NCBI GenBank assembly: GCA_033442325.1
Contig: JAWQFM010000014.1
Location: forward strand, 506,248 to 570,247
Source: Salpingoeca rosetta
Lineage: Eukaryota; Protista; Choanoflagellata
Length of the DNA: 64,000 nucleotides
Reading direction: 5' to 3'
Shown here: piece after piece, positions 13,308 through 19,957 of the stretch
Position numbering within the stretch: the stretch's first letter is position 1
How the letters are laid out: each line of letters starts with the position of its first letter
Notes under the pieces: generated by a model
What the model was told of the DNA's origin: nothing
What the model saw: only the letters and a program-made list of their open reading frames with translations
The model's database searches: none
Program-made: the position numbers and the translations under genes

Positions 13308-16094
13308 ATGGCTGCTGGTAGTGCTTGTAGTAGTGGTGGTGGTGGTGGTGCCTCTTCGACGCGATGGTGGCATGTGTTGGCAGGGATCATGGCAGCCGTT
13401 GCCTTGCTCGCTGCAAGATTCAGCACACAGGCTGCTGCACAGTCTTTTCCAGATGGCGATACGTACACGCTGGAGTTGACTGTGTTGAATACTCTGACTT
13501 GTGCCACACAGCCGATATCCTTGGGTGCGCTGGCCAACAGCGTCAACCCAACGCTTATTGTGACAGGGCGATCGTCGGTCGCTTCTTGCACGGTGATTGT
13601 TGAGTTGCCAACGATGGTGGACAGCTTCACCATTGACGTTGCTGGAGACGCTTCGGGGTCAGCCGTGACGATCCGTGTCAACACCTTGGAGACTGTCAAT
13701 ACATTGCACATCATCGATGAAGCAGGCATCATCAATGTGGACATGCCTTCGCTCGGCACTCTGGATTTGTTGGTGGTCTCCAGTTCCAACGGAGCAGAAC
13801 TTTCAGTGGCCATCGGTGAATCAGCATCGTACGTGTCACGCGGCGTGTGTGTGTGTGTGTGTGTGAGGTGTGTGTGTGTGTGTGTGAGGTGTGTGTGTGT
13901 GTGTGTGTGTGTGTGTGTGTGTGTGTGTGTGTGTGTGTGTGTGTGTGTGTGTGTGTGTGTGTAGGTTGATTGGCGTTCCTTGCCACAATCGTTTCACTAC
14001 TTCTCCTCACTCAGTCACACCCCACTCACTCCTCGTGCGCCTCACCACAACCACACACCATGACAATAGGAGCGATGTCCCAGATCTGTTTGGCATCTCG
14101 CGCCTTGGAAGCTTGAATGTGGGCGATGGCACTGGTATCCTCGAGTTGCAGCTTCATGGAGCATGCGCCACTGTGGATGCGCTCAAAGCAGTAACGTCAA
14201 GCACCACAACCGTCCCCAAGTGGACCGTCACCTTTGATACCTTTGTACGGGCAATGCACGAGCAGCTCCCCTTTGCTCGTTTGGGGGCTGTTGTTGTTCT
14301 GTTTTTGTTGGCTTTGTCTATTTGTTGATGTCGTGCGAGAATGACGACAGACTAACCAGAGCACTTGGCTGAGGCGTGCTTGGAGTGTTCAGCGGTGTCT
14401 GTTTTGCTGCCACGTTTACACTTCGTTCTCACTGCATAATCCTCGCACATGCACAATTTAGGTTGGCATTGCTGATGTGGCGACCTGGCCAGAATTGTTG
14501 GTGGCTTGGAACGGGCAATTCACACCCGTGTCGGATGTTGTGGCAGGGGTACCTGAGGTGCCCCAGATTTGCAGCGCGAATGGGTTTGACCCGCTGGTGT
14601 CACAGCCGCCAACCTACTCCCCAAACACGACCACAGCGACCGCAACAAACACGACAAACGCAGTGAACACAACGACCACAACGACAGTGACGGGCAACGA
14701 TCGCATTCCAAAGCCAACTACGCTGCCTCCGCCTCACTTCACGACGACCACAACGACTACAACCACAACACCGACCACGATCATAAACACAACCACAACA
14801 CCGGCAACCACAACAACCACAACCACAACAACCACAACAACCACAACAACCACAACAACCACAACAACCACCACAACGTCACCTCAGCAATTCACCACAA
14901 CTACAACCACGACTACGCAGCCACCAACGACAACGACAACCACGACTACGCTTCCACCAACAACCACGACCACAACAACAACCCTTCCCGTCACAGTTAC
15001 ACAGACGACGTCCTCGTCGCCTTCGTCCAGCTTGAGCGTCAATCCAGCACTTGGCTCGACGTCGGGCACGGGCGTGGGCATGAACGCCGCTTCCTCTTCG
15101 TCCTCAACGACGACTGCTGGGCCCGGTGGGCCCGGGTCTTCTCCCTCAAACTCAGATGCCTCCAAATGGGCTGTTCCTGCCGGCGCCGCAGGTGTGTGTG
15201 TGTGTGTGTGTGTGTGTGTGTGTGTGTGTGTGTGTGTGTGTGTGTGTGTGTGTGTGTGTGGTTTATTAAGTGTGAGTCAAAGATGGTGCATTGTTATAGG
15301 CCTAACAGCACAGAGCTAGAGGCACGAAACAGATACAGACATAAATAAAAATTCACTCTACTAAATCGCATATCATCATACTCATATACTCATGAGTTCA
15401 CTCGCACCTATACCCGACGACTAACAGATGTGTAGACGAGAGACTGTATACGTGCTCAGCAAGTAGAAATAAAAATAAAAAAAAGACGNNNNNNNNNNNN
15501 NNNNNNNNNNNNNNNNNNNNNNNNNNNNNNNNNNNNNNNNNNNNNNNNNNNNNNNNNNNNNNNNNNNNNNNNNNNNNNNNNNNNNNNNTGCGTGAGGCCT
15601 ACAGACACGCACAGAGAGACAGATAGACAGAGAGAGAGAGACAGACAGAGAGAGAGAGACAGAGACAGACAGAGACAGAGAGACAGAGACAGAGACAGAG
15701 AGAGACAGAGAGAGAGAGACAGACAGACAGACACACACACACACACAGCCACACAGGACTGACAATCCTTGGCTCTCCCCCTCACAGATAGAGAGTGAAA
15801 CAGAGCCACGCACTCACATACCTTGCCCTGCACGTACTCTGGCACACACACACACACACACACACACACACACACACACACACACACACACACACACACA
15901 CACACACACACACACACACACACAACGCTCCCGTGCAGCAAACCATGCCGCCCAACAACGGCACGGCCATGCCTGTGCTGTCGACTGTCTCTGGCTGCAT
16001 GCATGCCCAAAACCGCGGGTTTGATCCGTTGTGGCTGGAGGACAACCCATTGTACGAATCCACAGACAGGCGCGCATCCGCCTCGGAGCTGTAG
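13308..16094 (+). CDS. Type I cell-surface receptor A: signal peptide, unassigned beta-rich ectodomain, Thr-rich mucin stalk, NPxY/PDZ-ligand tail (TM exon probably in the gap at 15489-15588)
   Basis: Exons 13308-13828, 14070-14244, 14462-15191, [missing], 15939-16094. Tail ...[27 protein letters not shown]. Paralogous to 16852-19957 with the same intron positions and phases. Confidence 0.82.
15489..15588. other. Assembly gap (100 N); further gaps at 23834-24555, 25422-25521 and 31440-31539
   Basis: Runs of N, each at or close to a microsatellite. Confidence 0.99.
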
Positions 16095-16851
16095 AAGGAT
16101 TGCTGGATTGTGTCGAGGAGTTTTGGGGGCCGGGGGCGGTAGCTGAGTGCGTGGGTGGGTTTGTGGATGCATGAGTGTGAGTGAGAGTGTGAGATTGCGC
16201 GCGCGTGCTCGCGTGGGTGTATGATAGTGAGAGCGCTAGAGCGAGTGACGGTTTAATGTGTGCGTGCGTGTGTTTCTTGACGTTGTATCCTTCTTTGCCT
16301 GCCTTGCATTGCCTTTTCACAACGTTTCAACATTCTGTATGATGACCTACCCCTTCTTTCCTTCAGTGAGTGTAAAAGCCATGCATGATTGAATGATGAT
16401 TTGCTTTGTATGGACGGCAGGGACTTTGCCTTCCCGCCCAAGTGATGTTTAGTTTGTTTGCCTGCGGAGCCGGCCACGATGACATCATCATCATCCGCAT
16501 GACGTCGCGCCTGGCGACATCACAATGTGGCCCCATGCCGCGCGACATTGGGACGTGGTTCCTCCAATTTTATGTTACATGATGAGTTTCGTTTGGTGCC
16601 TCGTTTTTCCCACACAGCTGCTGCCACCTCCTAGTCGGCAGAGCAGAGCGTCTCTTCCTTTCTTGTTCCTCTCGAGCAACGACGACAAGTTATTGTACAT
16701 TATCCCTCCTGAGGTCCGAGGCTGGGAGCAAGAAGCCATCACCATCTCACTGCAGTGAATGCTGCTTTGCGGAGTTGCCCTGGCTGTCCTGCTGTCAGCC
16801 CCAAGCCACCCGGCCACAGAACACACACAGCAGAACGGACACACACACACA

Positions 16852-19800: not shown

Positions 19801-19957
19801 ATAGATTGGTGCGTCCGAGCCACACACGGTCATGCCTGTGCTGTCAACCATTTCTGGTTGCGTGCATGCACAAAACCGCGGGTTCGATGCTGTGTGGCTG
19901 GAGGACAACCCATTGTACGAATCAACAGGCAGGCGTGCATCCGTCTCTGTGTTGTAG
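16852..19957 (+). CDS. Type I cell-surface receptor B, tandem paralog of A
   Basis: Exons 16852-17411, 17777-17927, 18121-19147, 19408-19490 (TM GGGLVLVVVAVAAVATY followed by RKGRRHR), 19805-19957 (tail ...[27 protein letters not shown]). All introns are GT-AG and frame-consistent. Confidence 0.87.
18240..18762 (+). repeat. Coding microsatellites (ACCACA)n and (ACA)n encoding the poly-Thr mucin stalk
   Basis: Hexamer array at ~18247-18385 and pure (ACA)n at ~18559-18762, both in frame in receptor B exon 3. Confidence 0.95.

Follow-up and report, generated by a model that had tools for sequence, protein, structure and literature searches.

Two adjacent genes on the plus strand of a 64,000-nucleotide stretch of the Salpingoeca rosetta genome (contig JAWQFM010000014.1, positions 506,248 to 570,247; hereafter the window, to which all coordinates refer) were analysed computationally. 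Gene A (PTSG_05187, 13308–16094) and gene B (16852–19957) are tandemly duplicated paralogues. The proteins they encode are probably orphan type I surface glycoproteins, in which a beta-helix head is presented on a mucin-like stalk and a single transmembrane (TM) helix leads to a short cytoplasmic tail with adaptor-docking motifs. The two heads have diverged strongly, while the last part of the tail has been kept nearly the same.

Gene models were obtained by three-frame reading, and exons were joined by canonical GT-AG introns only. In gene A, exon 1 (13308–13828) encodes the putative signal peptide together with the initial two thirds of the head, and exon 2 (14070–14244) continues the head; exon 1 and the exon 1/2 splice are contained in the public protein. 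Exon 3 (14462–15191) encodes the end of the head (to Cys269), a stalk of 206 residues with 44% Thr and the juxtamembrane sequence WAVPAGAAG. The tail exon (15939–16094; 51 amino acids plus stop) contains the conserved block (about 15963–16091), which ends in SEL. Gene B is organized likewise. Exon 1 (16852–17411) specifies the putative signal peptide, an acidic linker and head sequence, and was assigned by homology and by the identical intron position in A; exon 2 (17777–17927) continues the head and follows from the gene model and homology with A. Exon 3 (18121–19147) encodes the end of the head (to Cys276), a 303-residue stalk with 60% Thr and the juxtamembrane WAAPVGAAG. An 83-nt exon 4 (19408–19490) encodes the predicted TM helix GGLVLVVVAVAAVA followed by the basic stop-transfer sequence YRKGRRHR, and the tail exon (19805–19957; 50 amino acids plus stop) carries the conserved block (about 19826–19954) with SVL at its end. 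The complete gene B model comprises 1974 nt in frame, which equals 657 amino acids, and its stalk end, STWAAPVGAAG, leads directly into the TM helix.

Both genes have introns of phases 2, 0 and 1 after exons 1, 2 and 3, and in the protein alignment the positions of these introns coincide. The two heads, each of about 225 amino acids, are 31% identical (31–33%) over a 268-residue alignment (E = 2e-26), and four cysteines are conserved. The intron positions and phases, the order of signal peptide, head, Thr-rich stalk, TM helix and tail, and the divergence of the heads had all been proposed in a preliminary description of the locus made from the letters alone, and they are borne out here for a pair of type I mucin-stalk proteins. 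The product of gene B has the layout of a membrane-tethered mucin, with a hydrophobic N-terminus, a Thr tract, a single TM segment with a basic cluster and a tail of 63 amino acids; gene A has the same layout apart from the unseen TM segment. The stalk of B is encoded in part by codon microsatellites, namely an (ACCACA)24 array (97%) at 18247–18392 and a perfect (ACA)68.7 array at 18559–18764, and stalk length is for this reason likely to change by slippage. The perfect purity points to recent expansion, and length polymorphism is likely. No further copy of head or tail was found in the window with tblastn.

RNA-seq reads were aligned to 18765–20400, the 3' part of gene B. Raw reads from two stranded runs span 19147|19408 and 19490|19805, exactly as modelled, and contigs of two further runs cross the two junctions as well, extending at least 82 nt to either side; the spliced form of these contigs points to cDNA as their origin. 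The first mates are all on the minus strand, so that the transcript of B lies on the plus strand. The depth was about 12–17 across the 3' part of exon 3. The stalk, TM and tail exons of gene B are joined in RNA; had the tail exons been found unjoined, the preliminary description would have fallen by its own terms. Within intron 3, the segment 19205–19369 had about twofold coverage in one RNA run and none in another, as might arise from minor intron retention or pre-mRNA. Spliced contigs with the 3' end of B extend about 1.4 kb beyond 20400, toward a convergent tubulin-tyrosine ligase gene, and represent either a long 3' untranslated region (UTR) of B or overlapping convergent transcripts.

The head was modelled with AlphaFold2 from residues 18–206 of the public A protein and the rows of B exons 1 and 2. 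The model is regular and all-beta, with a predicted local distance difference test (pLDDT) score of 67 and a predicted TM-score (pTM) of 0.69. A sequence profile search of the PDB with the head gave no match at E values up to 10, and a Foldseek search of the PDB with the model returned nothing significant. VIA-align, for which a background Z of 7–8 is quoted, was run on 48,161 chains and yielded 30 matches at Z ≥ 8, all of which we take to be beta-helix or beta-solenoid proteins. The highest score was that of 3lyc (Z 10.5, 146 residues aligned), followed by CAP C-terminal domains (about 10) and pectate lyase 1ee6 (9.8); the Bacteroides 'putative adhesins' 3ljy (9.2), 3pet and 3jx8 (both 8.9) and 4ygu were in the range of 8.7–9.2. 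Shape matches in the ESM Atlas had TM-scores of 0.53–0.67 to DUF4097/DUF2807, Cthe_2159 and phage fibre clusters. The head is thus a probable right-handed beta-helix, as judged from the model. Only the fold class is supported, because generic beta-helices such as pectate lyases and CAP C-terminal domains score equally with the Bacteroides adhesins. In structure, the latter (3lyc, 3ljy, 3pet, 3jx8 and 4ygu) match the predicted head best, with 124–146 residues aligned, but they share only 7–16% sequence identity with it and have no mucin stalk, eukaryotic TM segment or signalling tail. The public A protein bears the automatic UniRef name 'auto-transporter adhesin head GIN domain-containing protein'; despite this name, the DUF2807 and DUF4097 profiles (PF10988, PF13349) were not matched by the head in a Pfam scan at E values up to 10. 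A head of the L-domain or leucine-rich repeat (LRR) type was also considered and was discarded, as LRR chains reached a Foldseek TM-score of only 0.14 and the strong VIA-align matches were all beta-helices.

A 133-position HMMER profile built from exon 1 of both genes was used to seek relatives among 1.84 billion representatives, including the NCBI and EukProt choanoflagellate entries. The sole real match of this exhaustive search was the public protein of gene A itself. Five other matches were repetitive bacterial proteins (MopE repeats, YadA, Big_4, TIG) that aligned over many short stretches, and they were rejected as compositional. An Atlas feature search with exon 1 of B returned unnamed clusters and weak SGBP and Cadherin leads at 0.87, which were not used. 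For the tail, a word search among proteins of 55–175 amino acids found nothing, and a PDB profile search hit Mycoplasma protein M only, a chance match that recurred in Pfam. The only metagenome pattern match to the tail lay at positions 10001–10111 of a bacterial contig with ABC transporter and glycosyltransferase genes, antisense to a glycosyltransferase-like open reading frame (ORF), and was likewise attributed to chance. As far as can be seen, A and B constitute an orphan two-gene set without a detectable relative in the other species searched, and the 'receptor family' of the preliminary description is reduced to these two genes.

The last 41 residues of the two tails are identical at 34 positions, and a 15-residue stretch and the terminal S-x-L are unchanged in both. 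The patterns of a PTB-type N-P-x-Y, a PKA-type R-R-x-S and a class I PDZ-type C-terminus are found, as pattern matches only, in both paralogues; the earlier observation of a conserved, three-motif tail behind diverged heads was reproduced. The AlphaFold2 model of the tail, made from a two-row alignment, had no fold (pLDDT 53, pTM 0.15), and the tail is probably disordered and motif-bearing. Relative to the Tyr at position 0, hydrophobic residues occupy −8, −7 and −6 (V/L, W, L), Glu is found at −5 and Asp at −4. PTB domains of the Dab/Shc type and endocytic signals of the LDLR type need a hydrophobic residue at −5 from Tyr, which in the classical endocytic FxNPxY is aromatic. With its preceding hydrophobic residues, the NPLY site of A and B bears more resemblance to an acidic substrate site of tyrosine kinases. 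The tyrosine kinase HMTK1 of Monosiga brevicollis belongs to a PTB-bearing family, and its PTB domain binds NPXY-type peptides, several of them more strongly when phosphorylated (PMC3082566). For this reason, a PTB protein, which might be a kinase, is at least as plausible a docking partner of the A and B tails as talin. The motifs are indeed present but of a generic kind, and talin, PTB, PKA and PDZ proteins are putative partners suggested by these short motifs.

It is possible, if somewhat doubtful, that A and B are structural mucins that anchor the glycocalyx or theca and do not signal. The NPxY would then serve endocytosis or recycling, and the PDZ ligand would retain the proteins at the collar or the basal pole. 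The stalk makes up 40–50% of each protein and the tail is short, probably disordered and without a catalytic domain, all of which would suit such a role, as would the use of NPxY as a classical internalisation and recycling signal in LDLR and, with SNX17, in LRP1. However, the aromatic residue of FxNPxY at −5 is replaced by Glu, and pure sorting does not explain the conserved 19-residue block upstream of the motif. Animal membrane mucins and NPxY endocytic receptors (MUC-type proteins; LDLR, LRP and megalin) resemble A and B in having a Ser/Thr stalk that presents a distal domain, an NPxY tail and a PDZ-type C-terminus. They differ in that A and B lack SEA, EGF, LDL-A and YWTD modules as well as the aromatic residue of FxNPxY, and there is no homology.

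Substitution rates between A and B were determined by Nei-Gojobori counting, as the silent (dS) and replacement (dN) changes per site. In the head, dS was 1.76 (saturated) and dN 0.72, so that dN/dS is at most about 0.41, and silent sites were also saturated in the 45 juxtamembrane codons. The 43 tail codons had a dS of 0.46 and a dN of 0.088, corresponding to a dN/dS of about 0.19; divergence at silent sites is about four times higher than at replacement sites, and the comparison of silent with replacement changes (11 and 8) gave Fisher p = 8.5e-4. This comparison by domain, called for in the preliminary description, indicates purifying selection on the tail. The similarity of the two genes at the DNA level (blastn) is limited to the coding block of the tail: it sets in 8–9 codons downstream of the exon start and breaks off at the stop codon. 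The first 8–9 codons of the tail exon and the preceding intron are unrelated between A and B, and the 3'UTRs have an ungapped identity of 0.33–0.43 and no local blastn match.

These data bear on the question of whether the tail owes its likeness mainly to conversion between the two neighbouring genes or to an exchange of exons, with the motifs carried along by chance, which we hold to be rather improbable. The adjacent, equally oriented position of A and B would favour exchange, and the silent divergence (pS) of the tail, 0.34, is below that of the head, 0.68 (p = 6e-4). Moreover, where A and B have an identical residue, its codon is also unchanged in 24 of 33 cases (73%) in the tail versus 29 of 67 (43%) in the head (p = 0.006). 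Against such an origin, the 11 silent and 8 replacement changes accumulated since any such event correspond to the low dN/dS given above, and the replacements all spare the conserved 15-residue stretch and the C-terminal positions −2 and 0. Also, the 5' edge of the similarity lies inside the exon, and beyond the stop codon identity is at the random level. Since no similarity is left beyond the stop codon and the 3'UTRs cannot be aligned, a recent conversion that also covered the UTR is excluded. The silent sites of the tail are nevertheless younger than those of the head, which suggests later homogenisation, and the contrast in identity (83% in the tail versus 31% in the head) consequently makes the difference in constraint look larger than it is. 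Homogenisation or exchange of the tail probably took place later than the original duplication, and selection has preserved the tail since. Recent gene conversion, named beforehand as an observation that would overturn the proposal, is in this way set aside, while an older event is suggested.

The tail exon of gene A is separated from exon 3 by an assembly gap (100 N, 15489–15588), which starts 297 nt after exon 3 and ends 350 nt before the tail exon; introns 3 and 4 of gene B are 260 and 314 nt long. Exon 3 of A ends in phase 1 with WAVPAGAAG, which matches WAAPVGAAG at the TM start of B, and the tail exon starts in phase 0. A direct splice between the two exons is out of frame and meets a stop after 28 codons, and frame reading of the gap flanks (15192–15488 and 15589–15938) revealed no TM-like ORF. 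From these phases, the frameshift and the absence of a TM-like ORF in the flanks, an exon of 3n+2 nucleotides (83 nt in B) would be missing in or at the gap, and a missing TM exon within the gap is the most economical reading of gene A. The TM segment had been reported for B and presumed to lie in the gap for A: the former is now joined to its neighbours in RNA, and the latter is placed by exon phase and position only. The left flank of the gap (15262–15488) is AT-rich for this genome, with A runs and sequence of the 'ataaataaaaa' type, and the right flank is an (AGAC/AGAG)n array; the flanking sequence could be contig-end junk or an insertion.

The window sequence is identical to S. rosetta scaffold GL832966.1 (GCA_000188695.1), on which PTSG_05187 (XP_004993765.1, UniProt F2UAR7) is annotated as a protein of 232 amino acids at window positions 13389–14328. 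In this public model, translation starts at Met28, exon 1 is spliced to exon 2, and intron 2 is left unspliced, so that the frame closes within it at a stop codon (14326–14328); no public annotation covers the stalk exon (14462–15191) or the tail exon (15939–16094). Its 90% cluster has a single member, and a literature search found no paper that names it. The public annotation thus stops gene A after exon 2. Together with the invisible TM exon, the out-of-frame direct splice and the restriction of the RNA reads to the 3' part of gene B, this agrees with A being a decaying or secreted copy, in which the TM exon is absent and the tail exon a relic or unused. We regard decay as unlikely, since exon 3 of A has the same end phase and WA-P-GAAG start of the TM segment as B, the gap lies exactly at the position of the 83-nt exon of B with flanks of similar length, the four visible exons are all open in frame, and the tail is under purifying selection.

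Neither S. rosetta nor M. brevicollis has a beta-integrin (PMC6040629), and the Dictyostelium protein SibA, which is not an integrin, binds talin via NPxY motifs (PMC9453864); the idea of an integrin analogue in S. rosetta is legitimate on these grounds. The preliminary description had put forward such an analogue. In this reading, W-x3-NPLY would bind the FERM domains of talin or kindlin and tie an adhesion head to actin, in place of the lost beta-integrin and in the manner of Dictyostelium SibA. The idea agrees with the conservation of both NPLY and the Trp that precedes it, and with a predicted head fold of the adhesin type. In the consensus of the integrin-beta tail, HDR(R/K)E lies close to the membrane and is followed by a first motif, W-x4-NPxY, and a more distal NxxY (in part from 10.1101/2020.04.29.069435). 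A and B have a single NPLY and a W-x3 spacing, with YRKGRRHR in the juxtamembrane position of B; both the HDRxE hinge and the distal NxxY are lacking. The Trp of integrin beta is 8 residues before the Tyr and here it is 7, one residue closer to the NPxY, so that the spacing differs from that in the integrin-beta tails to which the preliminary description had likened it. The head is predicted to be a beta-helix instead of a vWA/beta-I domain, and Pfam gave no match to Integrin_beta, VWA, PSI or EGF on any exon or on the public A protein. Integrin beta subunits do share with A and B a single-pass type I topology and a short tail with a Trp upstream of NPxY, for which a FERM/PTB link is proposed; A and B differ from them in the lack of beta-I/vWA, PSI and I-EGF domains, in a poly-Thr instead of a Cys-rich stalk and in having no known alpha partner. 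We found nothing specific to A or B that speaks for an integrin analogue, and consider it quite improbable.

The comparison with other NPxY proteins had a similar outcome. The description of the tail as LDLR-like was not upheld, as there are no LDL-A, EGF or YWTD Pfam domains and, five residues before the Tyr, Glu takes the place of Phe or Tyr. SibA to SibE ('similar to integrin beta') are type I adhesion proteins restricted to the lineage of Dictyostelium, a phagotrophic protist without canonical integrins, and form a small paralogous set with short NPxY tails, in all of which A and B are alike. However, the Sib proteins have a vWA domain, Cys-rich and bacterial-type repeats and two NPxY motifs, whereas A and B have no vWA domain, a predicted beta-helix on a Thr stalk and one NPxY together with RRAS and S-x-L; there is no sequence homology, and a link of A and B to talin would be suggested by the motif. 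Very improbable is the combined proposal of a convergent integrin- or Sib-like tail in a choanoflagellate without beta-integrin, in which W-x3-NPLY would recruit talin, kindlin or a PTB tyrosine kinase, phosphorylation of RRAS, beside a PDZ anchor, would gate this binding and the pair would act as receptors for adhesion to substrate or prey.

Several findings weigh against the interpretation of A and B as a pair of beta-helix/mucin glycoproteins with an adaptor-docking tail. No Pfam family matches any part of them (all exons, and residues 18–206 of the public A protein at E values up to 10). The fold of the head derives from a three-row alignment with middling confidence, and a Z of about 10 is little above the background. 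The TM exon of gene A is unseen and the splicing and expression of A are predicted only, and in gene B the junctions of exons 1, 2 and 3 rest on homology. The public annotation over gene B describes a product of 656 amino acids (16499–19957) that starts 353 nt upstream of the modelled start. The frame from the ATG at 16499 meets a stop after 27 codons, and an attempt to match the 656-residue model by adding one upstream exon to B failed; the product itself was not found in either protein database, even with identical query regions of 45 and 127 amino acids, for which low-complexity filtering may be responsible. In the tail, Glu at −5 from Tyr is a misfit to the FxNPxY of LDLR- and Dab/Shc-type ligands, and the higher share of identical codons bears on how much of its identity reflects constraint. 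In a set of two genes, conservation of the motifs is not separable from that of the whole 43-residue block, and an equally conserved half of the block (17 residues) contains no known motif.

Gene A is neighboured by a 2OG-Fe(II) oxygenase gene in divergent orientation, and a C2H2 zinc-finger protein gene is among the neighbours. The tubulin-tyrosine ligase gene convergent with B occupies about 20613–23259 on the minus strand, and a weak fatty-acid-hydroxylase match was found on the same strand at 23530–25152. The G+C content falls to 0.37 at 24001–26000, against about 55% for the genome; only flanking GT and TGTGGT microsatellites were found there. A dynein heavy chain gene (31584–44876, minus strand) consists of three very long exons (ORFs of 3284, 668 and 494 amino acids) in a GC-rich part (0.61–0.67), and an LRR receptor tyrosine kinase gene of the choanoflagellate type (46934–50701, plus strand) encodes, in one long ORF, eight LRR_8 stretches, after which the tyrosine kinase domain begins.

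With A and B read as tandem beta-helix/mucin glycoproteins, the following arrangement is envisaged. The head of about 225 residues, braced by four conserved cysteines, would be a beta-helix as in bacterial adhesins and in proteins that bind or cleave polysaccharides. It would be raised on a Thr-rich stalk of 200–300 residues, presumably O-glycosylated and extended, whose length may vary by microsatellite slippage. One TM helix would be followed by a cytoplasmic tail of about 63 residues, probably disordered. Ligand binding outside the cell most likely differs between the two diverged heads, with glycans, bacteria or the substrate as candidates, and through the common tail block of 43 residues both proteins would be linked to one set of cytoplasmic partners. 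The tail would most likely serve for the docking of adaptors at the acidic NPLY site, either a PTB-domain protein, as PTB-bearing tyrosine kinases occur in choanoflagellates, or endocytic sorting adaptors, with the RRAS site and the S-x-L C-terminus as possible regulatory and PDZ-anchoring elements.

The value of the pair is limited in two respects: without detectable relatives it says little on animal origins, and the functions ascribed to the tail all derive from short motifs. For the annotation of S. rosetta, the analysis brings a correction, in that PTSG_05187 is not a soluble protein of 232 amino acids but most likely a type I membrane protein of about 550 amino acids, of which the stalk, TM and tail exons are unannotated. 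The wider question is how, in the absence of integrins, choanoflagellates adhere to surfaces, catch bacteria and signal. To this question, A and B would contribute a concrete, testable example of a kinase-less receptor, in which a beta-helix head of the bacterial-adhesin type is combined with a mucin stalk and an adaptor-docking tail.

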